A stretch of DNA of 64,000 nt from Eutreptiella sp. 'Long Island Sound 2002'. Lineage: Eukaryota > Protista > Euglenida. The stretch lies in the NCBI GenBank assembly GCA_964036045.1, contig OZ038378.1, positions 200,384,001 through 200,448,000 of the forward strand, in the 5' to 3' direction. A program made the translations under genes and the position numbers. The notes beneath the pieces were generated by a model. That model made no database searches. It was given only the letters and a program-made list of their open reading frames with translations, and was not told the origin of the DNA. Shown here piece after piece: positions 3,890 through 59,716 of the stretch. Positions within the stretch are counted from its first letter, which is position 1. Each line of letters begins with the position of its first letter.

Positions 3890-4798
3890 AACAGGATGGA
3901 AGTGTACCTTCGTTTCGCCATATGAGAATGTTTGAGATAGGTCGACATGGTGGATTTGTCCTTAGGCTTGCCATCCGCGATAGTACTGAGTCCTCGTCCC
4001 TCTTTCGGGTATGCCCACGCGTGAGGTCGGTGTCAAATTTTATCTTGGTCAGCTGGATCTTGACGAGTTCTTTCTTGATCCACGTTGTCCGGAATGTTTC
4101 CGTTGCCCGCTCTGTCACTGTGCGCTTCACGGGAGCCTGCCCCGACTGCGCCCGTGTCTTCTCTGCTGTGTGAACGGGTTGCGATGCGGTCTGCTGCTCA
4201 CCCCCTTCCGGCAGTTTGGCATCCGAAGGCATGGCTTAGCAAAGGGGCTAACAAAGGGTCACACGGCACACTACAAAAGGCCACAGGGCTGCAAATTGTT
4301 GTTTTACACGCTTCTAATGTTGATGTCTACTGGCAGCGCTCGACGATTGAACACGGATGGCACAGTTAGCATCACAGTCGGATGCACCTGGTAAAAATCG
4401 AGGGTCAAACTCATTCACCTCAGAAAGGACAGCCACGGGGGCATCCGAATCATCACTGTAGACGGACACTGCTTCTAGAGGGGGGGAGTACGGGTCCCAT
4501 CCATCATCACCCACAAAATCAGCAGCCCTCAAGTCTGGACCTCCGGCTGCCCCACCAGGGGGGGGGGATTCTTCATCACTGTCACGGTCGCCATCATCAT
4601 TGGGGGGGGGCGGGTATTCGGGCGGGGTCCCTTTGCGCGAAACCACGTGCTGGCCGGCGTCGCTTGTACCGGTCTGGTGTATTACATGCGCGTAACAGGT
4701 CCTGTGCCTGTGCTACTGTTGTGTCCATATCACCTGGAGGACGTTGTGGCACGTGTCTACCCAGCTCTGTCATCACCTCAGCATCAACTTTGACAGGC

Positions 4799-35128: not shown

Positions 35129-35300
35129 GCCCCTTAGCACCTCAGAACAGCAACTGCCCTGGGCATGACAGATACCTCACACCGCAATGCTCAGTTGCCT
35201 TATTTCCAACAAAACAAACCCAGTAAAAAAACACAAACCCGAGAAATCCGTTTTTTTGTGAACTGATTCCATTGGGCAAATTTCTCCTTCCATGACATTA

Positions 35301-39669: not shown

Positions 39670-40605
39670 CGATAGGCATCATCTAAAACCCGCACCCTGT
39701 TTTTTTCATGCAAGCAAAAAGAGTGTATTGGTGATGACGTCACTAATTTGACAGGGTTACAGACTTTTTTGAAAAGTGAAAAAACACGCTGCGGCTGTTG
39801 GGTAGGTTAAGGTAGCTAAGGAGTTAAGGGGCCTAAGGATTTAAGGGGTGTAAGGAGTTACGGGGCCGTTGCATGCAATAAACACTAACACTCTGAGCCC
39901 TGCACATCCCTCCAATAGGAAACCCATGTTTTTGCCTCAGAATGTTTCCGCCTAATACAAAAATATCAGTGAAGAAAACGTCAAACTTCATATATTTAGA
40001 CCCTCAAGACCTTTCAATCCCTCCTTCAGCAGCAGTGCAGATCTGGCCAGGTAACACTGCAGCCTGCAGAGACAAACACCTGTTGCCCTTCCATTACAAC
40101 TACACGGTGGCTGCAATTTACTACTATTGGATAAACGAGGCACATTGTCTACTACTGCATGACGAGTAAAGCGACAACAATACCTTAATTAAAGTGACAC
40201 AAGCAGACAAAGCGGAGATTCAAAGCTGCTCTCGTTCAATTTGCAGTGTGCACAGTAATAGGTGAAACACATGCACAAGGGTTGCCTAGAGACTCAGGAA
40301 GGTGCGTAGGGGCAAGGGGGGGGGGGGGCTCTGAGACTGAATTGTCGGTCTACCAAAAAGACTGCTGGCAAAGGGTTCCAGTCTCCAAAGATTTTGCCCT
40401 TCTCTCAAGCAGTATGTTGGATTGGTTGGATTGGTGTGGGTGGATGAAGCCCCAACAAAAATTTGTGACTGTGACGCCCATCTGGAATGGGAGCATGTAC
40501 AGTCATCCAGCTGCAAATGGGCTAATGGAAAGACATGTACACCCTGAGGAGATCAGTGACAGGTGAAAGGGGACAGCCTGATGTGCACGCAACCTCATAC
40601 AAAAC

Positions 40606-41256
40606 CTGGCAGAGACAAAGATCCACATGCCTACAACGATACTTGTGCTGTGTCGCCCCCCTGGCATCGAGGTGCACTACCCATTTAATGGCGGGATGCC
40701 CAGCCAAGACATGGGCCCGGTACAGAAACTCCTCAGCCTTGTCCTGAGAGAATGAGGTGGCCAGGAACCCTGGAACACGATACACCTTCCCGGGCACATA
40801 AAATGTTTGGTGCTCATCTGACAAGCCACCTCCGCGCCAACAAATCCCATTGGAAGGAAAATTGACAGCACCGGATGGTCGCCTGATGACACATAAGGTG
40901 TTTATACCACGCACAAGGGTGGCCAGATGCCTCATGCCACCTGGTGCATCGGCACGTATGGCCTCATTGATGATGTTGCACAATGCCTTCCCATGTTGAG
41001 AGGAGAGGGGTAAGGGGGAGGTCCACAGACGCTGAGCAGCTGCCGGAACCTCAGTCAGCAGCTCGTCCTTGACCCTAAATGCTTCATTTTGCAATCGCTG
41101 AAAAAAATCTTTGCAATATGAATAATTGATGTCATGCACTTTACAATAGGCAGCTATGACCTCACATACTGCCTCCATCAGTTGATGTTGAAACTCGGGG
41201 GCCTTAGCCTGGTCATACGCCTTTCGGAACTCAGACGTACTCAAGGTACGCAGGGC
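40606..41256 (-). CDS. Second ADP-ribosyltransferase-like exon (helical subdomain plus R and S-T-S motifs), paralogous to the kinase-fused ART
   Basis: Phase-0 acceptor tttcctcag|GCC at 41256. Translation 'ALRTLSTSEFRKAY..LCNIINEAIR..ICWRGGGL..YRVPGFLATS..RCRHV'. Candidate donor CAG|GT at 40606. The catalytic ExE was not found. Confidence 0.7.
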
Positions 41257-42111
41257 CTGAGGAAAAGCAAAGGTGTTTACGTTGTCAAAGTCTGTGCTCC
41301 AAACGGTTGGAGTGGGGTCGCCCGGCTGTTGAGGCTTCCAGAAAAGCATTCGGCCTTCTCAGGGACATTGAGGGTAGAGGACCCGAGAGAGGGGTTAAGA
41401 AGCTGCTCACCACTGCCAGCAAAAAAGGCACTCCGCAGTGGACGAAGTGTGAATACTCTGCGCGAAGATATTTCTGCAATGCACTACCGGCAAGTCACGG
41501 GTTGCTGAGCTAGCACCCATGGCCTTGTGTGACATTCGCGTTGCTGGTTGTGGTGAGCACCCCCCAGCCTGGGGTCTTCGTGATGACCGCTTAACGGGCA
41601 CTGATTAGTGGAGGTTATGGGCAGCAGTTGCAGGGATGCAGGCAGGCTAAAGTAACACAGGGCTGTCTGTGTCGCTTTGTGAGGGCAAGTGGGGCCTACG
41701 ACAGGGGAGAGCGGGGGGGGTAGGCATGCAAACATGAACTAGGGCTACACGCAAGCGTTGAGTGAAATTGGGTGCAGCAGGGCGGGGGTTTGCAGAAATT
41801 CAGGTATAATCCAGGGCTGTGAGCAGGCACTGAGTGTGAGCAAGATGGGGTACGGCTAGGACAGGTGGGGTGTAACCAGGAGTAGGGGTGCAGGAATGGC
41901 AGGCGAATTTGGGGGTGGGTGCATGAGGTCCAAACTCCGTGACCTTCCAGAGTATTGCATGATGGAATGATGTTGTGTTCCTGATGTTGGTAGTGTAGCA
42001 AACCCATCACACATCCAAAGCGACGAATCTCGCCTCCAAATGGATGTGCACCAGCCCACAAACCACAAATGTCAAGCCACAGCAACAACACAAAGGTGAA
42101 CAGAAACAAAA

Positions 42112-43133: not shown

Positions 43134-45134
43134 TCAAGCCCAGGGGGCGAGAGGCAAATTTTCTGGTGCCCTCTGATTGTCGAATTCTGCCCTCAAAACC
43201 ACCGTGTGTGGCTTCTGAATGGTGGGTGCATCTTGCCACTCAACGGCCTCCACCGTGAAGGCCGAGTAGGGCGCAAAGAGGAACTCATTCTCGACTGCCA
43301 CGTTAGGGTTCGGTCCGAGGGAGCCATCGTGGATTGATATGAAATTGACATGTTTGCATCCCCGTGGGTCCAGCTTAATGGTCCACAAGACTTTATCCTC
43401 TTGCTGGCGCTCCATGAACTTCTTCGTCACCTGGATTTGGTCGGAAGTGGATAAAAACATCGGGACACGGTATTGCTTGCCTTGGACAAAGAAATGGCGG
43501 TGACGTTCAGGGAGCCCACCACCACGAAAGACTGTATTGTCCTTTGGCCACAAGATGGGCGCAGCTTCAGGTGCACGCCGCGTCACACAGAAGGTGTTAA
43601 TAGCACGGGTAATGGTCACGGCATGGATCACCTCATCCATCCTGAGCGCTTCATTGAGGATGCTGCACAATTCTCGCCCTTGAAAGGCTTCTGCAGTTGT
43701 GTACATGCGCATTGCACAGCACTTCAGTTTGTCTGCGTCTATCAGCTCATCAAGACCACCCGCCGTGAATGCAAGTCGCTGTACTTTTGCAAAATACTCA
43801 TCGGCCGCAGCGAGGTCATGGCCATGGCGCTGTGCAAACTGCCCGATCAAGGAACGGACACTCTCCATCAGCTCCGCTTGGCGAAGTGGGATGGACTCCG
43901 TGCGTGTAACGAGGATGCTGTACAATTTTTTGAACTGGCTCGTCCCGAAAGTGCGCAATGCCGACAACAATGGCGCCTTTACATCTGCGAAAGATGGCCT
44001 GTCATCGGGATTCTGGGCCCAGCACTCTCTCATGACATGGACAAGCAGAGCATTACTACTCTCTGGCGAAACATCTGGCCGCTTTTGAGCAACATATACT
44101 GCCTTCATCACCGCTGCCTCATTCTTTCCTTCCCATGGCCTGCTTCCATGCAGCAGTTCCCAGAGGATTATGGCATAGGAATAGACCTCGCTTTTCGGGC
44201 CGAATTCGTTATCGTACTGTTCTGGGGCCTTGTAAGCAAGAGTTCCTGCTGCAGCACGCATTGTGTGTCTCGTCGTGCTGATGTTGGGATTGACTGCAAG
44301 ACCAAAATCAGTAATCTTTGGTGTACAACAGGGACCATACAGGAGGACGTTGTCGCTCTTGAGGTCATGATGGAGAGTAGGCCCATTGGAATGAAGGAAA
44401 GCCATACCTTCAGCAATGCCAGTCGCCAGCTGCAGCTGCAAGAGCTCGTCATATAAGACTTTGGAGCGGTCGTGGTCGAGCAGCGCACGTAGTGAACCGG
44501 CTGGGGCAAGTTCCATGAGAAGACCAATCGAAGTGGGATCGTCGAGAACCACGCCGCATTGCTGCACGATGTTATCATGTGTGAGGCTCTGCAGCACTCG
44601 AAACTCGCGGCGTATGGAAGCCACAAGTTCTGCGTGCTCCGTTTCGGAAACGCCACCGAGGTTCACCTGCTTGAATGCCAACTGTTTATTGTTGAGCGTC
44701 ACTTCGTAAACAATGGCGTGCGAGCCCCTGCCTATCCTCTTTAGGACCTTGAGCGTTGCAGAGGGCACCTCAAAATCAGAGGCATTGAATTTGATGTGAC
44801 GCTGAGCTAACTGTCGGAGGGCCTCGACGTTCTGTGCCGCTCCCGGGCCAAAAGCTGCCTGCAGCGTGTCGACGCTGGTGTCCACAATGTCAGAGAGGTT
44901 AAGGATGCCTAAATCGAGGAGCGGGAGGGGAGAAAGGTCCAACTTCTGAAGTAAGGACAACAGGGTCTTGTCGAGCTTGCGTTTGGCAGCCAGCATCTTC
45001 TCGGCAACATCGGTGATCGTGATATTACCGTCCATCTGAAGCGCTTGCAGCAACACGAACTCCAGAATGTCTGCATTGACCTCCAACAGAGGCTGCTGGA
45101 GCATCGACTGCAGCTGTTGGCTGACAAGGGAACC
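43134..45134 (-). CDS. Terminal exon encoding a TKL-like non-RD protein kinase fused to an R-S-E mono-ADP-ribosyltransferase
   Basis: Kinase: IGRGSHAIVY, LAFK, RREF, LHHDLKSDN, ITDFG, GTLAYKAPE, EVYSY, DRPSF. ART: VFRG, FLSTS, ENEFLF. Phase-0 acceptor tttccag|GGT at 45134; stop TGA at 43134-36. Confidence 0.9.
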   Translation of the reverse strand, partial: GSLVSQQLQSMLQQPLLEVNADILEFVLLQALQMDGNITITDVAEKMLAAKRKLDKTLLSLLQKLDLSPLPLLDLGILNLSDIVDTSVDTLQAAFGPGAAQNVEALRQLAQRHIKFNASDFEVPSATLKVLKRIGRGSHAIVYEVTLNNKQLAFKQVNLGGVSETEHAELVASIRREFRVLQSLTHDNIVQQCGVVLDDPTSIGLLMELAPAGSLRALLDHDRSKVLYDELLQLQLATGIAEGMAFLHSNGPTLHHDLKSDNVLLYGPCCTPKITDFGLAVNPNISTTRHTMRAAAGTLAYKAPEQYDNEFGPKSEVYSYAIILWELLHGSRPWEGKNEAAVMKAVYVAQKRPDVSPESSNALLVHVMRECWAQNPDDRPSFADVKAPLLSALRTFGTSQFKKLYSILVTRTESIPLRQAELMESVRSLIGQFAQRHGHDLAAADEYFAKVQRLAFTAGGLDELIDADKLKCCAMRMYTTAEAFQGRELCSILNEALRMDEVIHAVTITRAINTFCVTRRAPEAAPILWPKDNTVFRGGGLPERHRHFFVQGKQYRVPMFLSTSDQIQVTKKFMERQQEDKVLWTIKLDPRGCKHVNFISIHDGSLGPNPNVAVENEFLFAPYSAFTVEAVEWQDAPTIQKPHTVVLRAEFDNQRAPENLPLAPWA

Positions 45135-48100
45135 CTGGAAATGATTTAGCAAGGCAAGGAAACCGGGGGTTGGGGGGGGATGAGGCAGGGATGGAGGGAA
45201 GGTAAGGAGAGCAGCCGACGCGTGGAAATGCAGCAAAGGGAGAAAGCACAAACCTAAAATGAGGAGTGAATTGATGAAGAGCCGAAACACGCACAGCAAC
45301 CTCAACAACATCGGGTTCTCAGGCCAACAACGCAAAGCCCTGTTCCAGGCGCATTCATGCGAGGTTTACCTGCAACCCTTCCGCTCCCCATGCACTGCAT
45401 GCCCCTGCATTATGGTCTATTGTTCTGCAGCCCTGATACACATCCACAGTACAAGGAAAAAGGATCCTGCTACCAGGGTACAGTGTCTGCTGTTCATGTC
45501 ACAAGTCTCAACCTGCAGATCAGGTCCACCAACAGGAACGAAAATCCAACCCGTCTACCATCAGTTGTCTGCCAATTTACTTCTGTGGAACGCCATCCAT
45601 CCAAAGCGTTCTCTTGGTTCACAGAGGCGTCGCGGTGGCCACAAACCGGACAACTGTTAGGGCGGAGGGGCTTTCAATGGGGGGTTCCAGCCTCCCCTGA
45701 CCAGGGCCCTCCTTCAAAATCTCAAGAGGCTGGCATTCCACATTCCTACTACAACGGCCTCAGACGTCACTGAAACTGCAAAATCCAGAAATACGCTACT
45801 TTGCAATCAGCGGTGACAGGGTGGATCGGAAACTCCATGGTATTGGGACGTGGTGAACGTTGGCCCCCTACCATTTTGACCCCGCAGGCTTGAATATGGC
45901 CCCTGGGTTCACGTTGGCTGTTTAATGGTCCAACCCTTGGCCTCAACCGCTACCCTCCCCCCAGTCTACTAGGAACTTGAAGCCCTCTCCCCCCCAATCG
46001 AACAGCTTGCAGCCCTTTGGCGAATATTCAAAGCTCTTCAAAGCAATCGACCATTGGCATTGGGGACTTGGTAGTTGCTGCAAAGATGGCGCATGGAGGC
46101 ATGTGGACTGGGCATCCACTGCAGCACCCCGCTTAACAAACCGAGGCTGGCTGTAATTGGATAGCACACCTCAAGCCGTGTCTCCTCCGGTTCTATTCTG
46201 TGCCCTTGCTCTCCGAAATGATCATCTGCAACATTGTAGCAGACATGGACCAGAGGAACCCCTCCCCCTTTTGCAGGATGACTCGTGGCTCAGGCTACAC
46301 CAGCGATTCGGCCAAACAGATGGGGGAGGGGGGTAATTTGGGGTTTCCAGATCCGATGATCAGATGCCCCCCCAAAAAGGCTGCACATTACGCGAGAACA
46401 CGGGCAAAATATGGCCTGTCAGCTTTGGCAAGTATACAAAGTAGAATGTGAAATTGTGGACAAGAGCGGACGCCTCTTTTGTAGAGGTGCAACACACACA
46501 CATTGCCACAGTACCTTGTGTCAAGCTGCGCAAGATTGGATCGCCAGGTGGGGCCAAATTCTTGACGGATGGCGGGACATCATTAACAGTCTACCAGCAG
46601 TGTCGATGCGACCAGTCATTCCACACCAGTTCCAAAGGAGCCAGTCGGACAGGTTGGCAGATCTCAACAGGTCATGCATACGACTGTCTGGTTGCACAGC
46701 TCCTCACTGTGCGCCTTGAAAGCCACGCACATCACAGGGCCGCATTGACATCCCTGGACTCCAAGTTTGAACACATTGCAGCCACTTCTGCCTCAGCAAG
46801 ATATTGAAATGGTCCGAATCCACGGCCAGAGCCAGGCAAATTGGCGGGGTGGCCTGTTTCGGTTATGGGAAAGAAAGACCCCGCGTGTCCCCACACTTGT
46901 ACGCAGACGCTCAGATAGAAGTGATTAGGGGTTCCAGTTGGTGTATGGGTCCAGTTGGTAGTCAGAATTGCATTTTTTCAGCAAGGGCACCGACCACAGG
47001 ACTTGGAGTCCAAAAAAATTGTGCTGCTATGTGGCGTGTGGTACCTGAGTGCCCAATCCCTTGTGCAGGTGTGGGCCCAACGCAGCAAGAGCTGCGGCCA
47101 CAGGACTTGGAGTCCAGGAAAGTGATGCGGGTGCGTGGTATGGTACCCGAGTCCCCGATCATCACTTGCGCAGGTGTGGGCCCAAGTTGCTTGTTCTTGG
47201 AATTGTCGGTGAAAAATGGAAAATCTGGTGGACTGGCACAGGAACTGTCCCGGGGCATGCAAAGGTACGCCCCAGCTGGACATTGTGCCTGCTGCAGGGG
47301 CATAGGGGCTGTAGCAGAAGGGCAGCAGTGAAAATGGAATGATGGTAGTACCTTGGGATGCAGAATGTAGTGAAATGGGTGTGCCCCAGGGAGTAAGAGG
47401 GGGGTAGGGGGAGGCATGGGTATCAACCCCTGCCAGTTATTGGTGCATGCACCAGTACAACCCCCGCCGCAGACAGGGTGCAGCAGAAGGTGGGTACCTG
47501 AAAAGGTACAGGGCACACGGACCACCATCATGATCTTGCTCATTGCATCATTGGAAATGCGGTTGTCTGAGTGCAGAAAAGAGCGCAATCAGGAGGAGGG
47601 GACAGGAGGTTGGTCTGAATTAGGGAACGGGGGACCCCCTTCCGCCTCCTTGGCATTTGAAAAACAACACACAGCACAGGGCAAGAGAAGCCACAGAAGC
47701 ACATCGGCGACACCGGACCTCAATTGAGGACCGTGCAGCAGTTATCACCGACCGAAAATACGCTGAATGGCATCCGCATTGATTGGCTCGATGCTCCTTC
47801 TCACGTTTCCAGTCCCATTTTTCTGCCGTGTAATCATCCATCTGCATTCTTCTGTCGTTCGTTACATCACTTGGTACATTCATGAAACCCCAGTGCCAAA
47901 ACGAACGGGGCACAACGATGCCGAAGCTGGTCACAGGTCGGATCATTTGAGTCTGTTATAATGTGAGTTTTGACGCTGTGTTCACGTCCGTGGTCGACTT
48001 TCTTGCTGCAAGATTAGCAAAACAGCAGCCCACCATTGTTATACAGAACACACACACACACAGTCACACACATAACGGAAAAGGTGAGCGCTGATCCCTA

Positions 48101-51100
48101 ACCCCAGCTTCCCACCCCAGTGCACCTTCCATTCCCTCCTTCCCACTGGCACCCCACAACAACAAAAAGTGCGTGCGGCACAGGCCGCTTCGCTCCGGAA
48201 CCCCTTCGCACCTCAGAACTGCAACTGCCCTGGGCATGACGGACACCTCAGGCTCCAATGCAACAGTGAGGCAGGGCTCTGCAGGGACAGAGGGTGCTGT
48301 GGTCCTGAACAAGGTCGCATGGCGGCAGGAAACCACCAGGTCTGCATCCATTCTGCCCAAGACAACAGCCACAACATACCTCCAAGATCCAATGATGTCA
48401 GTGATTTGCACTGCGGAAGAACAGCGGCCAACTCTTTGGTACCTTCATCCCCGATGCCATTGCCTGCACACATGACGGAGGGGGTGAGAGCACATTTCGT
48501 CGCCCTGGACAATGGGCACACGGAGCGGGAGTCACACACATAACGGAAAAGGTGAGCGCTGATCCCTAACCCCAGCTTCCCACCCCAGTGCACCTTCCAT
48601 TCCCTCCTTCCCACTGGCACCCCACAACAACAAAAAGTGCGTGCGGCACAGGCCGCTTCGCTCCGGAACCCCTTCGCACCTCAGAACTGCAACTGCCCTG
48701 GGCATGACGGACACCTCAGGCTCCAATGCAACAGTGAGGCAGGGCTCTGCAGGGACAGAGGGTGCTGTGGTCCTGAACAAGGTCGCATGGCGGCAGGAAA
48801 CCACCAGGACTGCAGCTGAGGCGTCTGCATCCATTCTGCCCAAGACAACAGCCACAACATACATTCAAGATTCAATGATGTCAGCGATTTGCAATGCGGA
48901 AGAACAGCGGCCAACTCTTTGGTACCTTCATCCCCGATGTGATTATCTGCACACATGACGGAGGGGGTGAGAGCACATTTCGTCGCCCTGGACAATGGGC
49001 ACACGGAGCGGGAGTCACACACATAACGGAAAAGGTGAGCGCTGATCCCTAACCCCAGCTTCCCACCCCAGTGCACCTTCCACTCCCTCCTTCCCACTGG
49101 CACCCCACAACAACAAAAAGTGCGTGCGGCACAGGCCGCTTCGCTCCGGAACCCCTTCGCACCTCAGAACTGCAACTGCCCTGGGCATGACGGACACCTC
49201 AGGCTCCAATGCAACAGTGAGGCAGGGCTCTGCAGGGACAGAGGGTGCTGTGGTCCTGAACAAGGTCGCATGGCGGCAGGAAACCACCAGGTCTGCATCC
49301 ATTCTGCCCAAGACAACAGCCACAACATACCTCGAAGATCCAATGATGTCAGTGATTTGCACTGCGGAAGAACAGCGGCCAACTCTTTGGTACCTTCATC
49401 CCCGATGCGATTATCTGCACACATGACGGAGGGGGTGAGAGCACATTTCGTCGCCCTGGACAATGGGCACACGGAGCGGGAGTCACACACATAACGGAAA
49501 AGGTGAGCGCTGATCCCTAACCCCAGCTTCCCACCCCAGTGCACCTTCCATTCCCTCCTTCCCACTGGCACCCCACAACAACAAAAAGTGCGTGCGGCAC
49601 AGGCCGCTTCGCTCCGGAACCCCTTCGCACCTCAGAACTGCAACTGCCCTGGGCATGACGGACACCTCAGGCTCCAATGCAACAGTGAGGCAGGGCTCTG
49701 CAGGGACAGAGGGTGCTGTGGTCCTGAACAAGGTCGCATGGCGGCAGGAAACCACCAGGACTGCAGCTGAGGCGTCTGCATCCATTCTGCCCAAGACAAC
49801 AGCCACAACATACTTCCAAGATCCAATGATGTCAGCGATTTGCACTGCGGAAGAACAGCGGCCAACTCTTTGGTACCTTCATCCCCGATGCGATTATCTG
49901 CACACATGACGGAGGGGGTGAGAGCATATTTCGTCACCGTGGACAATGGGCACACGGAGCGGGAGTCACACACGTAACGGAAAAGGTGAGCGCTGATCCC
50001 TAACCCCAGCTTCCCACCCCAGTGCACCTTCCACTCCCTCCTTCCCACTGGCACCCCACAACAACAAAAAGTGCGTGCGGCACAGGCCGCTTCGCTCCGG
50101 AACCCCTTCGCACCTCAGAACTGCAACTGCCCTGGGCATGACGGACACCTCAGGCTCCAATGCAACAGTGAGGCAGGGCTCTGCAGGGACAGAGGGTGCT
50201 GTGGTCCTGAACAAGGTCGCATGGCGGCAGGAAACCACCAGGACTGCAGCTGAGGCGTCTGCATCCATTCTGCCCAAGACAACAGCCACAACATACTTCG
50301 AAATTTCATTGATGTCAGCGATTTGCAATGCGGAAGAACAGCGGCCAACTCTTTGGTACCTTCAACCCCGATGCCATTGCCTGCACACATGACGGAGGGG
50401 GTGAGAGCATATTTCGTCACCTGGGCAATGGGCACACGGAGCGGGAGTCACACACATAACGGAAAAGGTGAGCGCTGATCCCTAACCCCAGCTTCCCACC
50501 CCAGTGCACCTTCCATTCCCTCCTTCCCACTGGCACCCCACAACAACAAAAAGTGCGTGCGGCACAGGCCGCTTCGCTCCGGAACCCCTTCGCACCTCAG
50601 AACTGCAACTGCCCTGGGCATGACGGACACCTCAGGCTCCAATGCAACAGTGAGGCAGGGCTCTGCAGGGACAGAGGGTGCTGTGGTCCTGAACAAGGTC
50701 GCATGGCGGCAGGAAACCACCAGGACTGCAGCTGAGGCGTCTGCATCCATTCTGCCCAAGACAACAGCCACAACATACCTCCAAGATCCAATGATGTCAG
50801 CGATTTGCACTGCGGAAGAACAGCGGCCAACTCTTTGGTACCTTCAACCCCGATGCGATTGCCTGCACACATGACGGAGGGGGTGAGAGCACATTTCGTC
50901 GCCCTGGACAATGGGCACACGGAGCGGGAGTCACACACGTAACGGAAAAGGTGAGCGCTGATCCCTAACCCCAGCTTCCCACCCCAGTGCACCTTCCATT
51001 CCCTACTTCCCACTGGCACCCCACAACAATTAAAAGTGCGTGCGGCACAGGCCGCTTCGCTCCGGAACCCCTTCGCACCTCAGAACTGCAACTGCCCTGG

Positions 51101-54100
51101 GCATGACGGACACCTCAGGCTCCAATGCAACAGTGAGGCAGGGCTCTGCAGGGACAGAGGGTGCTGTGGTCCTGAACAAGGTCGCATGGCGGCAGGAAAC
51201 CACCAGGACTGCAGCTGAGGCGTCTGCATCCATTCTGCCCAAGACAACAGCCACAACATACATCCAAGATTCAATGATGTCAGCAATTTGCACTGCGGAA
51301 GAACAGCGGCCAACTCTTTGGTACCTTCATCCCCGATGTAATTATCTGCACACATGACGGAGGGGGTGAGGGCACATTTCGTCGCCCTGGACAATGGGCG
51401 CACGGAGCGGGAGTTGCACACATAACGGAAAAGGTGAGCGCTGATCCCTAACCCCAGCTTCCCACCCCAGTGCACCTTCCATTCCCTCCTTCCCACTGGC
51501 ACCCCACAACAACAAAAAGTGCGTGCGGCACAGGCCGCTTCGCTCCGGAACCCCTTCGCACCTCAGAACTGCAACTGCCCTGGGCATGACGGACACCTCA
51601 GGCTCCAATGCAACAGTGAGGCAGGGCTCTGCAGGGACAGAGGGTGCTGTGGTCCTGAACAAGGTCGCATGGCGGCAGGAAACCACCAGGACTGCAGCTG
51701 AGGCGTCTGCATCCATTCTGCCCAAGACAACAGCCACAGCATACTTCGAAATTTCATTGATGTCAGCGATTTGCACTGCGGAAGAACAGCGGCCAACTCT
51801 TTGGTACCTTCATCCCCGATGCCATTGCCTGCACACATGACGGAGGGGGTGAGAGCATATTTCGTCGCCCTGGACAATGGGCACACGGAGCGGGAGTCAC
51901 ACACACAACGGAAAAGGTGAGCGCTGATCCCTAACCCCAGCTTCCCACCCCAGTGCACCTTCCATTCCCTCCTTCCCACTGGCACCCCACAACAACAAAA
52001 AGTGCGTGCGGCACAGGCCGCTTCGCTCCGGAACCCCTTCGCACCTCAGAACTGCAACTGCCCTGGGCATGACGGACACCTCAGGCTCCAATGCAACAGT
52101 GAGGCAGGGCTCTGCAGGGACAGAGGGTGCTGTGGTCCTGAACAAGGTCGCATGGCGGCAGGAAACCACCAGGACTGCAGCTGAGGCGTCTGCATCCATT
52201 CTGCCCAGGACAACAGCCACAACATACATTCAAGATCCAATGATGTCAGCGATTTGCACTGCGGAAGAACAGCGGCCAACTCTTTGGTACCTTCAACCCC
52301 GATGCCATTCCCTGCACACATGACGGAGGGGGTGAGAGCACATTTCGTCGCCCTGGACAATGGGCACACGGAGCGGGAGTCACACACATAACGGAAAAGG
52401 TGAGCGCTGATCCCTAACCCCAGCTTCCCACCCCAGTGCACCTTCCATTCCCTCCTTCCCACTGGCACCCCACAACAACAAAAAGTGCGTGCGGCACAGG
52501 CCGCTTCGCTCCGGAACCCCTTCGCACCTCAGAACTGCAACTGCCCTGGGCATGACGGACACGTCAGGCTCCAATGCAACAGTGAGGCAGGGCTCTGCAG
52601 GGACAGAGGGTGCTGTGGTCCTGAACAAGGTCGCATGGCGGCAGGAAACCACCAGGACTGCAGCTGAGGCGTCTGCATCCATTCTGCCCAAGACAACAGC
52701 CACAACATACATCCAAGATCCAATGATGTCAGCGATTTGCACTGCGGAAGAACAGCGGCCAACTCTTTGGTACCTTCATCCCCGATGCGATTATCTGCAC
52801 ACATGACGGAGGGGGTGAGAGCACATTTTGTCACCCTGGACAATGGGCACACGGAGCGGGAGTCACACACATAACGGAAAAGGTGAGCGCTGATCCCTAA
52901 CCCCAGCTTCAGCACCCGCCTCCCCTGACACCCTGCGAGCACAACACTGATGTCCTCCATGGACCGACGGGCGCCTGACTGTGATCGCATGATTGTCTGG
53001 CGTCTGGTCCTGCTTCCCCGCGCGTGCGCTGCGGGACATAGACTTCTGGGCGGGCGGGCGGGCCCTCGCTCTTAAAATTAAAAGAGACTGACATGGGAGA
53101 GATGGAAGGTTCGATGGAGGGGGGGAAGGAGCTGGGGAGGCTGTGTGGGCTGAACCTACTTTGCTTCGTGAGCTACGCAACTAAGGTTCAGCACCCGCCT
53201 CCCCTGACACCCTGCGAGCACAACACTGATGTCCTCCATGGACCGACGGGCGCAGTGTGCTCGCGAATGCGAGCTGGAATTTCGTTGGGACTCTCAGCTT
53301 CTCTCTTCCCCGAAACTCACCCCCCCCCCCCCTCATCGGCCCTCGCCCGCTCTCAGCATCCAGGGGGACCTGGGGAGATACTCCAGACGTTTATAACGCT
53401 GCGGAGTCCCGCTCCACTGTCGGCGTCGCTCTTCTGCGGCTTGTATTGCCGCCTTGCGGGACGGGAGGGACTTTAACCGGCTCATGGGGTCCGCGGGATT
53501 CAGCGCGGACTCGACCCAGAAGGTGCCTATTTGCAGATTGCTCCAGAGTCGGAGCCAGAATATGCGTCGCAGGATTCGTTGCTGGACCGGGCATCCTGCT
53601 GCTGCCCGCATCCCCATAGTTTGGCAGCGGGAGACTTCGCTGTCCGTTCCTACAGTCACTACCTTCCATCCCATATAGACCGCCATTTTGCACGCCATAT
53701 ATACGCCATAGAATTCTGCCTACTGAAGCGTGCGGATCCACTGTGGGCAACGCGACGACCTGTGCAGCGTCGCGCCCACAATGCCCACCCTGAAGCCGCG
53801 TCCCTCCTCAGCCGCATCTGTGAAAAACTGGATTCCGTCTGTGCGTGGGGAGTGCTCTGCTGTGGGATTCTTGGGGCGTTCGGGGGGGTACGTGTGTGCC
53901 ACTGCACTAAAAACCAGCACAGTGCCCAACCCGCGCGCCATGCCTCTTGTGAAAACCCTGGACCCTGCCTCCAGCGCCCTGTAGCTGCCTGCCATAAAAC
54001 AGGAAAGCCCCGCCCCCGGCCGCGACAGCCAGCAGAGCTGCCCCAGCAGCTTGCGGAGGCGCCGCGGCTCCACGGTACCCCGACCCACGGCACGCACCCA

Positions 54101-57100
54101 CGCACGCAGCGCGCTCTGGACTCCACCCTTGGCGTTCTGTATGGTTCTCTGTTTGCTGTCTATATGCTTTCCAATGAAGCTGATGGCACGCACAGGCTTG
54201 GGCTCACTTTTAATGCTAATTATAAAGCCGGCCCGCCGCAGGCGGCTCGTGACTCTGCGGACCGCACTCCTCAGCTCCCTTTTGCTGCCTGCACAGAACA
54301 ATATATCATCAATGTAGACCCAGGCCCTTGCCGAGGTCCCCCGAAGGGCCCCTGCGACGATACTGCGGACCAAGGTCTGGCACACCAGTGGCGAGTAGCG
54401 CCAGCCGAAGGGCAGACGCGTGTACCTGTACGCCCTGCCGTCCGCGGAGCGTAAGACGAAAATGCGGCGCCACAGGCGCGGCAGCTTTATGCTCCAGAAT
54501 GCGTTCTGAATGTCTAATTTCGCCAGCCAGGGGGCTTTACCCCCCCCCACCTCCCCCCTCAGCCAGTCCCTCAGACCCTCAAGGCCTGGCAGCCGGAATT
54601 TCGCCGGGCTGCGCGCGTCGGCCTCATTTATTGGGGTGGCGTCTAAAATCATACGACATTTCTCCCGATTTTTCGGGCGTAAAAACGCTCGGGCGGTGGG
54701 GCGCAGCCTTGTGCGCTTTACCCCCTTCGTATCTGCCCGGATGGCTCGCATCATCAGTGGCAGCTTTGGGCAGCGCGATTCTAACCCCCCCCCCCCCCCC
54801 TGCGACTGGGCGTACACTGCCGCCAGCCCCCGCGGTACGAGCCTGTCCCACAGGGACTGGTGCACTGTGACTTCCCCCGCCTCCCCCAGACCCGCCGCAG
54901 CCGCCCCCTCCGGGATGTCCCCCTCCTCTTCTGATGAGTAATACCCGTCCTCTTCGCCCTCCAAACCCTCTTCCGCCACCCCCCCCAGTGCCGCCTCCAA
55001 AATTGATTTTTCGCCCACCGCTGTGTCCTCGCTTCCCCCCACCAGGGCCCGCTCAGCCTCCAGCAGCCCCAGAACCGCCCCCCTGACCATGTCCTTACGT
55101 CCTGCTTTGACGCCTGGCAGGCGGCTTATTGCCTCTGCCACCCGCCGGTGTCTCGGCAGCACCGCTGGCGGATCCCCCGCGGCCCCGCCCACCGACTTGG
55201 TCTCCGTCTCCGCCTTCCGGCTCCACTGCTCTGGCCGTTGGCTCCTCTCGCCGCTCGACTTGCAGCTGCCTTTGCGCCCTTGGCCTTGCCGTTGAGCGCC
55301 CCGAATGTCGCTGCGCCTTCTGCGGCTTCTCCTTCGGCGACTCCTCGACTTCGACCACCGTGACCCGCGGCGACGTTGTCCGCGTCCTCTTGCGACCCGC
55401 CTCGCTGCCGGCAGCCCCACGCGACCCAGGCCCAGCAGGTCGGATAGCGGGGACTTCGAGCTCGCGCCGCACCCAGCCGGGCCACATGCCGAGCGTGGTG
55501 CCCGCCGCCATCTCCGCTTTTGGGGTCCTGCCATCCCATGCCGGCTGCACCAGGGGTCCCCCACGCACGAAGCTCCACCGCGGGGGCGCCGTGTAGTAGA
55601 TTTGCGCAACCGCCGGCGTCTTCCAGCCCCCCCAGAGCATAATGAAGCGCACCGGGAGGCCGAGACCGTACAGTTGCGCAGCGCCGTATCTGCGGAACGA
55701 GTGCCAGCGCGTATTTTTGTAGCTGCCACCCGGCCTGTCGAGGAGGCCCCGCAGCCCGTCGTGCAGCCCGTCTCGCCCCCGGAACCACGCTGGTCGGTCC
55801 GGGTGATAGCCGTGGAGGGCGCGCAGCCGCGCCAGGAATCCTGCCCATCTCGCCGTCCACGGCCCCATGCTCTGTCGCTGCTCTCCGGCCCGCGACTTCG
55901 TTCCCGTGAAGACCAGCTCCTCTCCGTCGGCGCGGGCGGTGATGGCCTCGCTGGCCCTGAGGCAGTGCGAGCAAGACAGCGCGGCAAGGGCGACGATTTC
56001 CCACTCCGCGGCCGACCCTGCAGCGGCAGCCATGTGTTGTAGTGCGCCCATGCTGGCCCACTCCTTAACTGTCGTCCGTCCTGCCTTTTCGGCAGCCTTT
56101 GCTGCCCCCACCGCGAGGTACCAGTCTCCCGGTCGGACAGTGCGGCGCAGCCACCCCAGTTTTTCGAGTAGTCGCACCGCGGACAGAACCTTTTTGACTG
56201 CGCTTTCTCCCATGCCCTTCTCGACCAGGGAGGCGAGCTCGTCTTCCAGGACCCGTCGCCTGTGGCATCCTGGCTGCATCCTCTCTCTCCTTCTGAGGTG
56301 GCTGAGCGCCTGCAGATACCCCTCGAGGGTCGTGTCGCTGAGCCCTCGGACGACAGATGCGTCGTAGCCGGCTCCCCAGCCCCCACGCAGGGCCTGCCCG
56401 AGCCGCTCGGCGCCATCGGCAATGGGCAGATCCCGCTCTGCGGTTCACCTCGTCCCTTTTCCCCGCGTGCAGCCCCACTCGTCGCGATCAAAATACCAGT
56501 GGGCCTGCCCACAGTCTCCACACTTCGTCTTCGGGGGGTCCGTGCAATCTTCCCACGCTCCCGTGCGCTTGGACTTGAAGTGACGCCTCCCGTTCAGCAG
56601 GGTGAACTCGGTGTTGGCCGCGGAGCCTGTCCCGCGCCAGATCTCGCCTTCCTTGCGGCCCGCTATGCTGCTGCCCGCATGGCGCGCGGTACTCCTCTGC
56701 GGCGATCTACGCCTCCGCCCCCGTGACCTCCCGGAGGATGATGAAGAGCTGCTTGACGTCGTGCCGCTGCCGCTCGTGCTGCTGTCCTCGCTGTCGCTGC
56801 TGCTGTCTTTCCCGGCGCGCCCTTTTCCCTTTCGCTTCCGGTCCTTCTTTCGCTGCCGTCGCGCCTTCTTCTTCTCTTTGCGCCGCTTTTCCTTCATCTT
56901 GGCCTTTAGGTCATCAGCCCCAGTGACGTCACAGTCCAACAGGATCTTCCACACCTTTGCTGCCAGCGGTGGTGGCCCCTCGGCCCCCATCTCCTCGTCC
57001 TCTCGCAGCTGGGATTCCAGGGCCTTGCACAGCTTGATAGTCCACCGGGGCGCTCCCGCCCGCCTGCGCATGCTCCGGACCGCGCGCGTCGTCAGGCGGT

Positions 57101-59104
57101 TCCACTTGTCCCGTTCGCCCCGCTCCTCCTTGCCGTCCTCGTCGTCCGCTCCGATGCCTCCTCCGGCAGGCACCTTCCCCGGCTGCGTACCCGCTGATGG
57201 CCCCGCGTCGACTGTCCCCACGCGGCCGCCGTGATGGTGTCCTCCCGCGGCCGCTCGCTCCAGGTCCTGCAGAGACGCGCAGAGCTCAAAAGCCGCCTCT
57301 GATTGCGGCTGCGCCAACTCCAAATCGGGGACTTCGATGCCCCACGCCAGGCTTAACCCAAACAGGAATGCATCCCTGTAGGCCATAAAATTTTTGCAGA
57401 CCAGGCACACGTTGAGTGTGCGATTGAACAGCAGGGCCAGCTTGGAGGTGTTCAGCCTGGCCGTCTTCGTCCAGAATCGCACCCCCGCGTCGAGTACCCC
57501 ATGCCTGCTCTCGGTGGGCACCTCCGTTGCGCGCCAGTGCTCCCCCATGAGGCTGCACCACGCCCAGTCGAGCACATTTTCGTCTTGGGCCCGCAGCTTT
57601 TCCCACGACCATGCCCCCTCGCCGTCCAGCTGCTCTGTGGTTGACATGTCCCCCTGGCGGCCCTCGCTCTTAAAATTAAAAGAGACTGACATGGGAGAGA
57701 TGGAAGGTTCGATGGAGGGGGGGAAGGAGCTGGGGAGGCTGTGTGGGCTGAACCTACTTTGCTTCGTGAGCTACGCAACTAAGGTTCCCACCCCAGTGCA
57801 CCTTCCATTCCCTCCTTCCCACTGGCACCCCACAACAACAAAAAGTGCGTGCGGCACAGGCCGCTTCGCTCCGGAACCCCTTCGCACCTCAGAACTGCAA
57901 CTGCCCTGGGCATGACGGACACCTCAGGCTCCAATGCAACAGTGAGGCAGGGCTCTGCAGGGACAGAGGGTGCTGTGGTCCTGAACAAGGTCGCATGGCG
58001 GCAGGAAACCACCAGGACTGCAGCTGAGGCGTCTGCATCCATTCTGCCCAAGACAACAGCCACAACATACCTCGAAGATCCAATGATGTCAGCGATTTGC
58101 ACTGCGGAAGAACAGCGGCCAACTCTTTGGTACCTTCATCCCCGATGCCATTGCCTGCACACATGACGGAGGGGGTGAGAGCATATTTCGTCGCCCTGGA
58201 CAATGGGCACACGGAGCGGGAGTCACACACATAACGGAAAAAGTGAGCGCTGATCCCTAACCCCAGCTTCCCACCCCAGTGCACCTTCCATTCCCACTGG
58301 CACCCCACAACAACAAAAAGTGCGTGCGGCACAGGCCGCTTCGCTCCGGAACCCCTTCGCACCTCAGAACTGCAACTGCCCTGGGCATGACGGACACCTC
58401 AGGCTCCAATGCAACAGTGAGGCAGGGCTCTGCAGGGACAGAGGGTGCTGTGGTCCTGAACAAGGTCGCATGGCGGCAGGAAACCACCAGGACTGCAGCT
58501 GAGGCGTCTGCATCCATTCTGCCCAAGACAACAGCCACAACATACATTCAAGATTCAATGATGTCAGCGATTTGCACTGCGGAAGAACAGCGGCCAACTC
58601 TTTGGTACCTTCATCACCCATGCCATTCCCTGCACACATGACGGAGGGGGTGAGAGCACATTTCGTCGCCCTGGACAATGGGCACACGGAGCGGGAGTCA
58701 CACACATAACGGAAAAGGTGAGCGCTGATCCCTAACCCCAGCTTCCCACCCCAGTGCACCTTCCATTCCCACTGGCACCCCACAACAACAAAAAGTGCGT
58801 GCGGCACAGGCCGCTTCGCTCCGGAACCCCTTCGCACCTCAGAACTGCAACTGCCCTGGGCATGACGGACACCTCAGGCTCCAATGCAACAGTGAGGCAG
58901 GGCTCTGCAGGGACAGAGGGTGCTGTGGTCCTGAACAAGGTCGCATGGCGGCAGGAAACCACCAGGACTGCAGCTGAGGCGTCTGCATCCATTCTGCCCA
59001 AGACAACAGCCACAACATACATCCAAGATTCAATGATGTCAGCGATTTGCACTGCGGAAGAACAGCGGCCAACTCTTTGGTACCTTCAACCCCGATGCCA
59101 TTCC
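43134..59104 (-). CDS. Spliced LRR(x13)-kinase-ART gene model; the 5' part is not identified and probably lies right of 59.7 kb
   Basis: 84-nt LRR exons, each flanked by atgtgtgcag| and |gtatg: 59021-59104, 58546-58629, 58071-58154, 52711-52794, 52228-52311, 51745-51828, 51262-51345, 50779-50862, 50297-50380, 49814-49897, 49331-49414, 48863-48946, 48380-48463. Consensus xNxIGDEGTKELAAVLPQCKSLTSLxLx, with no stops after splicing. The join to 46170-46225 and 43134-45134 is inferred from phase. Confidence 0.7.
46170..46225 (-). CDS. Putative 56-nt linker exon joining the LRR array (phase 1) to the kinase exon (phase 0)
   Basis: Acceptor atgttgcag|AT, similar to the LRR acceptor atgtgtgcag, and donor GAG|GTGTGC. 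Encodes '(D)DHFGEQGHRIEPEETRLE', which resembles a final NxIGDEG LRR turn. Phases match on both sides. Confidence 0.5.
48064..52910 (-). repeat. Tandem exon-intron array, left block (10 LRR exons; period 483, 482 or 468 bp)
   Basis: Exon starts are spaced 483, 468, 483, 483, 482, 483, 483, 483, 483 bp. Introns are nearly identical. Confidence 0.97.
53333..55090 (-). CDS. pol: Reverse transcriptase-RNase H with one premature TAG (53720-53722) in RNase H
   Basis: RT: CRMILDA, KLDIQNAFW, LPFGWRYSP, YIDD. RNase H: FTDAA, LQ*AEF, GTDS, NPADPMSR. The ATG lies 4 nt after the YR stop. Confidence 0.92.
55095..56279 (-). CDS. Tyrosine recombinase of the YR retrotransposon
   Basis: Catalytic set: R (CLRASE), K (GTKS), HxxR (WHSFRR), W (WGGWKT), Y (AQIYY). 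Confidence 0.92.
   Translation of the reverse strand: MQPGCHRRRVLEDELASLVEKGMGESAVKKVLSAVRLLEKLGWLRRTVRPGDWYLAVGAAKAAEKAGRTTVKEWASMGALQHMAAAAGSAAEWEIVALAALSCSHCLRASEAITARADGEELVFTGTKSRAGEQRQSMGPWTARWAGFLARLRALHGYHPDRPAWFRGRDGLHDGLRGLLDRPGGSYKNTRWHSFRRYGAAQLYGLGLPVRFIMLWGGWKTPAVAQIYYTAPPRWSFVRGGPLVQPAWDGRTPKAEMAAGTTLGMWPGWVRRELEVPAIRPAGPGSRGAAGSEAGRKRTRTTSPRVTVVEVEESPKEKPQKAQRHSGRSTARPRAQRQLQVERREEPTARAVEPEGGDGDQVGGRGRGGSASGAAETPAGGRGNKPPARRQSRT
56445..57692 (-). CDS. gag: gag-like ORF1 of the YR retrotransposon
   Basis: 415-aa ORF (the likely start could also be ATG 57647) with K/R-rich and S-rich tracts and a C-terminal 'CGDCGQAHW' Cys/His motif. Homologous to 10907..11389. Confidence 0.65.
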   Translation of the reverse strand: MSVSFNFKSEGRQGDMSTTEQLDGEGAWSWEKLRAQDENVLDWAWCSLMGEHWRATEVPTESRHGVLDAGVRFWTKTARLNTSKLALLFNRTLNVCLVCKNFMAYRDAFLFGLSLAWGIEVPDLELAQPQSEAAFELCASLQDLERAAAGGHHHGGRVGTVDAGPSAGTQPGKVPAGGGIGADDEDGKEERGERDKWNRLTTRAVRSMRRRAGAPRWTIKLCKALESQLREDEEMGAEGPPPLAAKVWKILLDCDVTGADDLKAKMKEKRRKEKKKARRQRKKDRKRKGKGRAGKDSSSDSEDSSTSGSGTTSSSSSSSSGRSRGRRRRSPQRSTARHAGSSIAGRKEGEIWRGTGSAANTEFTLLNGRRHFKSKRTGAWEDCTDPPKTKCGDCGQAHWYFDRDEWGCTRGKGTR

Positions 59105-59345
59105 CTGCACACATGACGGAGGGGGTGAGAGCACATTTCGTCGCCCTGGACAATGGGCACACGGAGCGCGAGTCACACACATAACGGAAAAGGTGAGCGC
59201 TGATCCCTAACCCCAGCTTCCCACCCCAGTGCACCTTCCATTCCCTCCTTCCCACTGGCACCCCACAACAACAAAAAGTGCGTGCGGGACAGGCCGCTTC
59301 GCTCCGGAACCCCTTCGCACCTCAGAACAGCAACTGCCCTGGGCA
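57788..59345 (-). repeat. Tandem exon-intron array, right block (3 LRR exons; period 475 bp)
   Basis: Same unit; two introns carry an 8-bp deletion. The spacing 52711 to 58071 equals 483 plus the 4877-bp insertion. Confidence 0.97.
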
Positions 59346-59716
59346 TGACGGATACCTCAGACCGCAACGCTCAGTTGCCTAACTTCCAACAAAACAAACC
59401 CAGTAAAGAAACACATACCACAGAAAGGCGCTTTTTTGGTGAACTGATTCAATTGGGCAAATTTGTCCTTCCATGACATTATGACAAGATCAACAAAAGT
59501 AAAATCTTCGACAAAGAGCACACATTATTCTAGCCATATCAACTGACGTTGGTGTTCAGGGTTAAAACAAGTACTGTAAGGGCAAGCCCCAAGAAGGTCG
59601 GCTGTGGGCGATAGATTGGCAAAATTACCATAAGCTGCTATGACAGGTGGGCATCATTTAGGGAACACTGAATCTGTGCTGATACCTATTGTTGGGACTT
59701 TGACTTTGGTGCGTAG
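59311..59716. repeat. Dispersed repeat homologous to 35131..37492 but with a single copy of the 150-bp satellite unit
   Basis: Both loci share the left flank 'cacctcagaacagcaactgccctgggcatgac..ccttccatgacatta' and the right flank 'taagctgct..gggaacactgaatctgtgctgatacctatt..aggactgtgga'. Confidence 0.92.

Follow-up and report, generated by a model that had tools for sequence, protein, structure and literature searches.

Leucine-Rich Repeat Cassettes of a Euglenid Are Split by Introns at Their Most Variable Codon and Are Probably Re-paired at the DNA Level

The question raised by the locus described here is how a row of equal exons, each encoding one leucine-rich repeat (LRR), comes to vary most in the very codon that its introns cut in two, and whether the two parts of that codon are newly combined in the RNA, by splicing, or in the DNA. 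The locus is found in the euglenid Eutreptiella sp. 'Long Island Sound 2002' (assembly GCA_964036045.1, contig OZ038378.1, positions 200,384,001 to 200,448,000) and lies on the minus strand at 48380-59104 of this stretch of 64,000 nt, which we refer to as the window and whose numbering is used throughout. Based on the window and on searches of 2.28 Gb of genome sequence, we argue, with a probability of roughly 0.6 for the account as a whole, that the locus belongs to a euglenid gene family of at least six members encoding LRR proteins of the ribonuclease inhibitor (RI)/NLR class, which would be assembled from one-repeat cassettes re-paired at the DNA level, with diversifying selection acting at the junctions.

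The array consists of exactly 13 LRR exons (table 1), each 84 nt or 28 codons long and all in phase 1-1, opening with the last two bases of one codon and closing with the first base of the next. Each exon is preceded by the acceptor ccgtcatgtgtgcag and followed by the donor gtatgttgtggc (gtatgctg in one case), and all 26 splice sites are intact. The exons encode xNxIGxEGTKELAAVLPQCKSLTSLxLx, and the codon cut by the introns is that of the residue directly before the conserved Asn of LxLxxN, designated x8 here. Exon starts are GC and AT (five each) or GG (three), and exon ends are T (six), G (four) or A (three). In genomic order the twelve joins are TGG, TGC, GAT, TGG, TGC, AAT, TGC, GGC, AAT, AAT, GAT, and TGC, which are translated as W, C, D, W, C, N, C, G, N, N, D, and C, and all nine possible combinations of an end with a start are sense codons. 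An earlier note on this DNA, made from the sequence alone, had described introns that are all in phase 1 and cut the second x of LxLxxN, the same sets of exon ends and starts, the same order of junction residues and nine sense joins; our counts agree with it throughout, the intron position being seen in 13 of 13 exons and the residues being reproduced exactly. It had further claimed that any re-pairing of exons keeps the reading frame, which holds logically for exons that are all in phase 1-1; tandem duplication of one exon with its intron gives this property automatically. Tandem Repeats Finder reports a period of 475-483 bp in two blocks of 10.1 and 3.2 copies, separated by a retroelement.

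Using the 483-bp unit as a query against the genome, four further arrays were identified at 84-89% identity, and a sixth was found with the exon alone as the query. The six arrays total 100 exons, 87 of them in the five paralog arrays, and 94 junctions; all exons are 84 nt long, in phase 1-1 and of the form xNxIGxEGTKxLAAVLPQCKSLTSLxLx, and a single one is without an acceptor. A cassette is made up of the 84-nt exon and an intron of the conventional GT-AG type, about 392-399 nt long; from one paralog array to another, the consensus of the intron differs by 0.5-2.3%. All six arrays are preceded by a short first exon with an ATG, 20 codons and a phase-1 donor, which reads MSWKDKFAQLNQFTKKAPFC in the window and MLSKDKFAQLNQFTKEANLC in the paralogs. 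According to the predicted gene models, the proteins of this family would start almost directly with the repeats: no exon for a NACHT, NB-ARC or other NTPase domain was found between the 20-codon exon and the first LRR exon in any of the six arrays, and the six models contain no Roc-COR or other N-terminal domain. Following the LRRs, no Roc-COR was found either, the only large downstream open reading frame (ORF) matching kinase profiles alone in Pfam; the 3' flanks of the paralog arrays hold no recognizable coding sequence, and those of four of these arrays share nothing with the 3' region of the window. The spliced protein predicted for the window array would be 400 aa long. The only broken exon of the 100 lies in array L002 (reverse-strand position 4550), where the 5' end and the acceptor have been replaced (agggaacgattt, then TC as the first exon bases) and the exon reads SSIRVEVTKEL...

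The diversity within the arrays is concentrated at the splice junctions. In the window, nucleotide diversity (pi) is 7.75% in the exons and 1.0-1.2% in the introns, with 17 of 84 exon sites variable compared with about 18 of 399 intron sites. Across the six arrays, pi reaches 0.11-0.20 in the exon edges, defined as the first 16 and last 13 nt, but only 0.007-0.021 in the central 55 nt and 0.008-0.013 in the introns, which are about 99% identical within arrays; the 29 nt around the junction vary 10-16 times more than introns or exon cores. The ratio of nonsynonymous to synonymous differences per site (pN/pS, Nei-Gojobori) in the edge codons is 2.2-7.1 across the six arrays, with the window showing the highest edge diversity and the highest ratio (pN 0.179, pS 0.025, pN/pS 7.1), and we infer diversifying selection on the 29 nt around the splice junctions. 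At the protein level, x8 exceeds the other 27 positions in entropy (2.94 bits and 11 residues over the 94 junctions), followed by x10 (2.03 bits), x7 (1.76), x13 (1.05) and x5 (0.79) in the 100 exons, in which the helix positions are almost invariant. The split codon is as hypervariable as the earlier note had supposed, and the observation reaches beyond this codon: the whole variable patch straddles the intron.

The exons fit the consensus of 28-29-residue RI/NLR-class repeats, LxxLxLxxNxIGxxGaxxLaxxLxxxxx. A single exon scores 22.6 bits against Pfam LRR_6 (cut-off 23.4) and holds only half-repeats, profile positions 12-24 matching the exon start and positions 1-12 the exon end, so that the intron falls in the middle of the Pfam repeat; an intronless relative on contig C14 (L012) scores 27.4 bits, above the cut-off. 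Searching 1.84 billion representatives with a profile of the 13 exon units returned 2,103 RI-class matches, none of them close (best single repeat 19 of 26 residues identical, about 22 bits per repeat). For structure modeling we took a 107-aa relative encoded without introns on contig C14; its repeats share 59-63% of their residues with the window repeats, and a search with it as the query found no homologous protein. In the AlphaFold model (pLDDT 83.8) strand and helix alternate, the strand is formed by x3-L4-x5 of LxxLxLxxN, and x8 lies three residues on, in the ascending loop; the best Foldseek matches are NLRP1, NLRP3, NOD2 and ribonuclease inhibitor (TM 0.79-0.88, probability 1.00). By extension, x8 of the window protein would be located in the loop after the beta-strand. 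As part of the account given above, the intron probably cuts through the middle of the variable patch of LxxLxLxxNxIGx, with x5, x7 and x8 on one side and x8, x10 and x13 on the other, and not between repeats; each exon would then open within a binding patch, of which it supplies the second half, run on through an invariant helix and close with the first half of the patch that follows.

The pairing of exon ends with exon starts indicates where the parts of the codon are combined. When four paralog arrays are taken singly, exon starts show no dependence on the end base before them (permutation p 0.54-1.0), and one paralog array realizes six of its six possible junction codons; pooling the five paralogs (66 junctions) gives a Cramer's V of 0.35 between end and start (p 0.20). 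Family-wide, the entropy of the codon is 3.25 bits compared with 3.50 bits for the sum of the end and start entropies, with 15 of 28 codons realized. Within the intron, variable sites of the 5' part show linkage to the end of the exon upstream and those of the 3' part to the start of the exon downstream (V up to 0.72). Three-unit blocks recur at identical spacing in an array on contig C20, and copy number varies between recent paralogs (13, 18, 13, 13, 18 and 25 exons). Because the half-codons are independent, the linkage decays along the intron and blocks have been duplicated, these observations point to exchanges inside the long homogeneous introns at the level of the DNA, and the split codon would gain its diversity through recombination, on evidence that is genomic and evolutionary. 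The largest array of the family (L023+L024) also includes, besides a recurring three-unit block, a subfamily with a short intron of 270 nt and a spacing of 354 bp.

We propose that unequal crossing-over or gene conversion in the nearly identical introns, which would act as recombination spacers, both increases the number of cassettes and pairs them anew, and that diversifying selection keeps the sequences flanking the junctions different. With the first base of x8 coming from one unit and its last two from the next, an exchange within an intron could make a new residue without a point mutation, which may add about 1 bit of diversity at this position; if this is true, each re-pairing writes a new x8 residue together with a new pair of half-patches. 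The family may have a ligand-binding, immune-like or inhibitor role.

The earlier note had also drawn attention to the stop-free joins of this array, and it had suggested examining whether paralogous arrays also avoid the starts GA, AG and AA. They do: none of the 87 further exons in the five paralog arrays has such a start, which makes 0 of 100 for the family, in which 40 exons end in T. It should be noted that the number of distinct start dinucleotides is small, three in the window and six to seven across the family, with GG and AC the commonest at about a third of the exons each, and that the chance of avoiding AA, AG and GA is p = 0.51 for three dinucleotides, 0.21 for six and 0.15 for seven. 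Stop-freedom is probably a by-product of these few start dinucleotides and of purifying selection on the adjacent joins, and in all probability no sign of programmed diversification at the level of splicing; we see no argument for the latter in the stop-free exon ends. Exons that skipping would join to a stop do occur in a distant cassette family, which is not a close paralog. This array, on the same chromosome as the window (L019/L020, C1:142236000-142255999, minus strand), has 84-nt phase 1-1 exons with the intron at the same position as in the window, and two exon types, NxIGxEGGAALGKALETNSTLQTLxVx and IGLGSSGGQALGTALxNNTTLTSLxLS, which alternate at distances of 1.2-3.6 kb. The second type starts with AG and ends in T, the other exons there starting with TG, AC or GG, and skipping one exon would join T and AG to TAG; stop-freedom is thus no rule for the LRR cassettes of this genome, and, judged by the condition for refutation set in the earlier note, this array speaks against design, although it is only a distant relation. 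As the two families share the intron position at only 35-40% identity, the comparison also suggests that the intron site is old and inherited. Two other arrays, L013 (435 kb upstream) and the 17-kb L021/L022, yielded no 84-nt GT-AG exons under the filter used.

That the array is nevertheless a generator of diversity in the RNA, with exon skipping joining non-adjacent exons and with ends and starts selected for sense joins, appears very unlikely to us. Skipping would indeed keep the frame in exons of equal length, phase 1-1 and identical splice sites; the lack of AA, AG and GA starts despite the many T ends is in line with such selection, and alternative splicing of LRR cassettes is documented in brown-algal ROCO genes (PMC11378527) and in human NLRP3 (PMC6642158). 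Weighing more heavily are the chance level of stop-freedom (p 0.15-0.5), the TAG produced by a single-exon skip in the second cassette array, and the mixing of half-codons that is already present in the DNA; among introns that are ~99% identical no exon is marked out for a regulated choice. The introns and their splice sites resemble one another throughout, and nothing was seen that would direct such a choice, although stochastic skipping may occur. No RNA sequencing run matching 43134-52900 was found, the runs being DNA-like apart from three tiny ones of 2013 without a match, and a pattern of the exon-exon junction with 35 places, as expected of an intronless retrocopy, had no match in the genome. 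Avoidance of stops might instead be real and act on the DNA, if units with AA, AG or GA starts often became null after a crossover and were purged by second-order selection. Independent half-codons do imply frequent re-pairing, T ends 40 of the 100 exons, and the common start GG is one transition from both AG and GA, neither of which is seen; the test is, however, without statistical power (p 0.15-0.21 with 6-7 dinucleotides), K, E and Q may simply be disfavored at x8, and L019/L020 tolerates AG starts beside T ends, all of which leaves this second explanation improbable. To the idea that individual cells or clonal lineages yield different LRR proteins from one array, by stochastic skipping or by mitotic crossover in the introns, we would give very little credence; if it were true, cell- or lineage-specific re-pairing would amount to a repertoire-generating recognition system in a free-living protist. 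In four DNA short-read runs covering 47500-53300, the contigs break inside the array, and they showed no joints and one low-depth variant.

Several points weigh against the account of re-pairing in the DNA under diversifying selection, most of them concerning the window array itself. Expression of this array, its two outermost exons and constitutive splicing are predictions from the sequence, and no transcript match was found. Its ends and starts are mildly associated (p 0.03), probably through a three-unit higher-order repeat (exons 2-4 and 5-7), and free assortment is consequently shown in the paralogs and not in the window. The complete lack of AA, AG and GA starts in 100 exons is compatible with real avoidance; the divergence of the window from its paralogs, 5.5-7.3% in exon cores and 9-10% in introns, is weak evidence for purifying selection; and the structural placement of x8 relies on the model of a related family and not of the window protein. 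Finally, the window copy has lost the 3' flank common to its paralogs and carries a retroelement on the same strand in one intron, and it could be disabled. We consider it unlikely that the array is a 3'-truncated segmental copy from which nothing is now made and whose pattern is a relic of functional paralogs. The missing 3' flank, a last intron that breaks off at a (GT)n tract, the retroelement of about 4.9 kb with its 100% identical terminal repeats and the lack of a matching RNA run would all fit this; the 13 exons and their splice sites are nonetheless intact, the edge diversity and pN/pS are the highest of the six arrays, and the starts and ends of the window exons form a set not seen elsewhere in the family, AT and G being common here and rare in the paralogs, which implies diversification after copying. 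Similarly unlikely is a single LRR-kinase-ART protein, with exon 13 spliced over 3.1 kb into the neighboring kinase-ART gene at an acceptor at 45253 (cattttag, then GT), which suits a phase-1 join and leads into the kinase frame without a stop. Fusions of repeat sensors do exist in the kinase-ART family, a homologue (P0006) having N-terminal ankyrin repeats, and at two loci on contig C14 intronless LRRs adjoin a fragment of a similar kinase. On the other side, the first acceptor after exon 13 (48006) leads to a stop after 16 codons; 45253-45135 is a pyrimidine tract ending in ttccag and resembles an outron, and the acceptor at 45134 is out of frame for a phase-1 join; the closest homologue (P0002) and the window protein share an aligned start Met, 22 codons upstream of which P0002 has an in-frame stop. 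The kinase-ART query matches the genome in 26 places, none of them next to one of the five paralog arrays, and in four of these arrays the downstream flank has nothing in common with the 3' region of the window. The attachment of the LRR array to a kinase-toxin, as assumed in the earlier note, is unlikely on these grounds: the stop behind the nearest acceptor, the homologue starting at the aligned Met, and the zero of five paralog arrays that adjoin a kinase-ART gene.

The design found here is best compared with that of the brown-algal ROCO genes (LRR-Roc-COR), in which one LRR is encoded per 72-bp phase-2 exon and for which shuffled and alternatively spliced exons as well as positively selected residues of the concave face have been described (Zambounis et al. 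2012, PMC3341825; Teng et al. 2024, PMC11378527). Both systems have one LRR per symmetric tandem exon, an intron that splits a codon, exon numbers that vary between recent duplicates, and a positively selected concave face; in the brown algae, exon shuffling was proposed as a source of new specificities and alternative splicing of LRR exons was reported. The algal repeats, however, belong to another LRR class (modeled on plant PGIP) and are attached to Roc-COR, and their cut codon lies outside the LxxLxLxxN core, whereas the euglenid arrays have 84-bp phase-1 exons of the RI/NLR class, a cut inside the core at x8, introns that are ~99% identical, and no signaling domain demonstrably attached. 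The likeness to brown-algal genes raised in the earlier note extends to the one-LRR-per-exon design and not to ROCO membership, given the lack of Roc-COR and the difference in exon length and phase. In human NLRs, the borders of the frame-preserving 171-bp exons always fall at one particular point of the beta-sheet region, and exon 5 of NLRP3 can be skipped (PMC6642158, PMC4105827). These genes share RI-class repeats of 28/29 residues and modular, frame-preserving exons with the euglenid arrays, and the modularity was argued to permit alternative splicing, as in NLRP3 delta-exon 5 (Hoss et al. 2019, PMC6642158); their exons encode two repeats each, are few, old and diverged, lack homogenized introns and follow a NACHT domain, in contrast to the 13-25 units with one repeat per exon, concerted evolution and no NACHT seen here. 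Lamprey VLRs (compared in PMC3341825 and PMC6642158) likewise combine LRR cassettes, whose flanks are conserved and whose concave-face residues vary, into many different binding surfaces, but are assembled somatically into one incomplete gene by a process like gene conversion, whereas the euglenid arrays show germline or clonal-lineage variation.

The euglenid arrays work like ROCO and NLR cassette arrays and belong to neither family. Ribonuclease inhibitor (RNH1) is also a cytosolic, LRR-only protein of the RI class, with a fold match of TM ~0.81 to the model of the relative; its gene, however, is single and conserved, the repeats form A/B pairs of 57 residues, and there is no hypervariable cassette family. 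Dscam-type arrays resemble the euglenid ones in their tandem duplicated exons of equal length and phase. In Dscam, a mutually exclusive choice is guided by distinct selector and docking RNA elements, whereas the euglenid introns are all alike and the exons are presumably all included.

The one-repeat-per-exon genes of brown algae and the modular LRR exons of NLRs were both read as a route to rapid change of specificity, and the euglenid version suggests convergent evolution of variable binding surfaces that are friendly to recombination. Specific to the euglenid arrays is the position of the intron, which cuts the variable patch in the middle and, within it, the codon that varies most; each intronic exchange would there rewrite a contact residue. 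As a rapidly evolving system of recognition in a protist, the family is a good candidate. In the literature searched on Euglena together with leucine-rich repeats, no description of LRR cassette arrays in Euglena was found, and the E. gracilis genome paper (2.37-Gb assembly, PMC11252322) makes no mention of LRRs.

Table 1. Features of the window (positions in the 64,000-nt stretch) and the six cassette arrays of the family.
Feature	Position	Strand	Description
Predicted exon 1	59419..59479	-	ATG 59479-59477; 20 codons MSWKDKFAQLNQFTKKAPFC plus base G; donor gtatgtg, phase 1
Intron 1	59105..59418	-	314 nt; 3' two-thirds are array-type intron
LRR exon 1	59021..59104	-	starts GG, ends T; join from exon 1 G+GG = Gly
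LRR exon 2	58546..58629	-	starts GG, ends T; upstream join TGG = W
LRR exon 3	58071..58154	-	starts GC, ends G; upstream join TGC = C
Intron between LRR exons 3 and 4	52795..58070	-	5,276 nt, lengthened by transposon insertion
Retroelement in this intron	52908..57787	- (gene strand)	~4.9 kb; reverse-transcriptase ORF, Pfam RVT_1 E 9e-17
LRR exon 4	52711..52794	-	starts AT, ends T; upstream join GAT = D
LRR exon 5	52228..52311	-	starts GG, ends T; upstream join TGG = W
LRR exon 6	51745..51828	-	starts GC, ends A; upstream join TGC = C
LRR exon 7	51262..51345	-	starts AT, ends T; upstream join AAT = N
LRR exon 8	50779..50862	-	starts GC, ends G; upstream join TGC = C
LRR exon 9	50297..50380	-	starts GC, ends A; upstream join GGC = G
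LRR exon 10	49814..49897	-	starts AT, ends A; upstream join AAT = N
LRR exon 11	49331..49414	-	starts AT, ends G; upstream join AAT = N
LRR exon 12	48863..48946	-	starts AT, ends T; upstream join GAT = D
LRR exon 13	48380..48463	-	starts GC, ends G; upstream join TGC = C
Predicted last intron	48006..48379	-	array-type for ~320 nt, diverges at (GT)n tract, would end ...gctaatcttgcag
Predicted terminal exon	47956..48005	-	join G+CA..., would read A-RKSTTDVNTASKLTL-stop; without conservation in paralogs
Kinase-ART gene, most likely separate	43134..45104	-	ATG 45104; TKL-type kinase, Pfam PK_Tyr_Ser-Thr E 3e-43; C-terminal ART-like domain
Window array	contig C1		13 exons
Array L001	contig C14		18 exons
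Array L002	contig C23		13 exons
Array L003	contig C20		13 exons
Array L004	contig C20		18 exons
Array L023+L024	C20:11207000-11226980	+	25 exons; largest of family

Downstream of the array, a 733-codon ORF (43134-45335) encodes the TKL-type kinase followed by the ART-like domain, the latter without a Pfam match. Homologues of this protein in other protists are 576-774 aa long, contain no LRRs, and are 42-52% identical over almost the full length of the kinase-ART gene of the window; one of them (P0004) is named as a transcript of the haptophyte Pleurochrysis carterae. The closest homologue, P0002, starts at a Met aligned with 45104. An acceptor at 45134 (ttccag, then GG) follows a long pyrimidine tract and resembles a trans-splice acceptor, and euglenid mRNAs can be trans-spliced (PMC6221363). 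Splicing of LRR exon 13 in frame to this acceptor was rejected, the join being out of frame with a stop after about 36 codons, as was a coding function of the 77 ORF codons upstream of the Met at 45104, which are pyrimidine-rich and have no counterpart in any homologue. A second ART-like ORF, 33% identical to the first, lies at 40522-41349, about 1.8 kb downstream of the kinase-ART gene. The two loci on contig C14 mentioned above (L011:5570-6340 at 30.49 Mb and L012:3780-4520 at 24.12 Mb) are intronless, stop-interrupted LRR stretches, 59-63% identical to the window repeats, which run into a 41-residue fragment similar to subdomains IV-V of the window kinase (66% identical, in another frame); they look like chimeric pseudogene scraps.

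The two terminal repeats of the retroelement, 129 nt each, are 100% identical, which suggests that its insertion is very recent; a target-site duplication is not obvious. Elsewhere in the window, at about 35220-35300, there is an orphan copy of exon 1 and the start of intron 1, which is 91% identical to 59400-59631 and is not followed by an LRR array. It adjoins a 14-copy satellite of 150 bp (35220-37400) that derives from the sequence immediately 5' of the ATG of the LRR gene.

Using as a pattern the spliced-leader sequence of Euglena gracilis, followed by GT (25 nt in total), about 3,783 matches were found in the genome compared with none for the reversed control, which marks the genome as that of a euglenid. 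These copies, which are often regularly spaced at about 17-40 kb on contig C2, far exceed the number needed for spliced-leader RNA genes alone.

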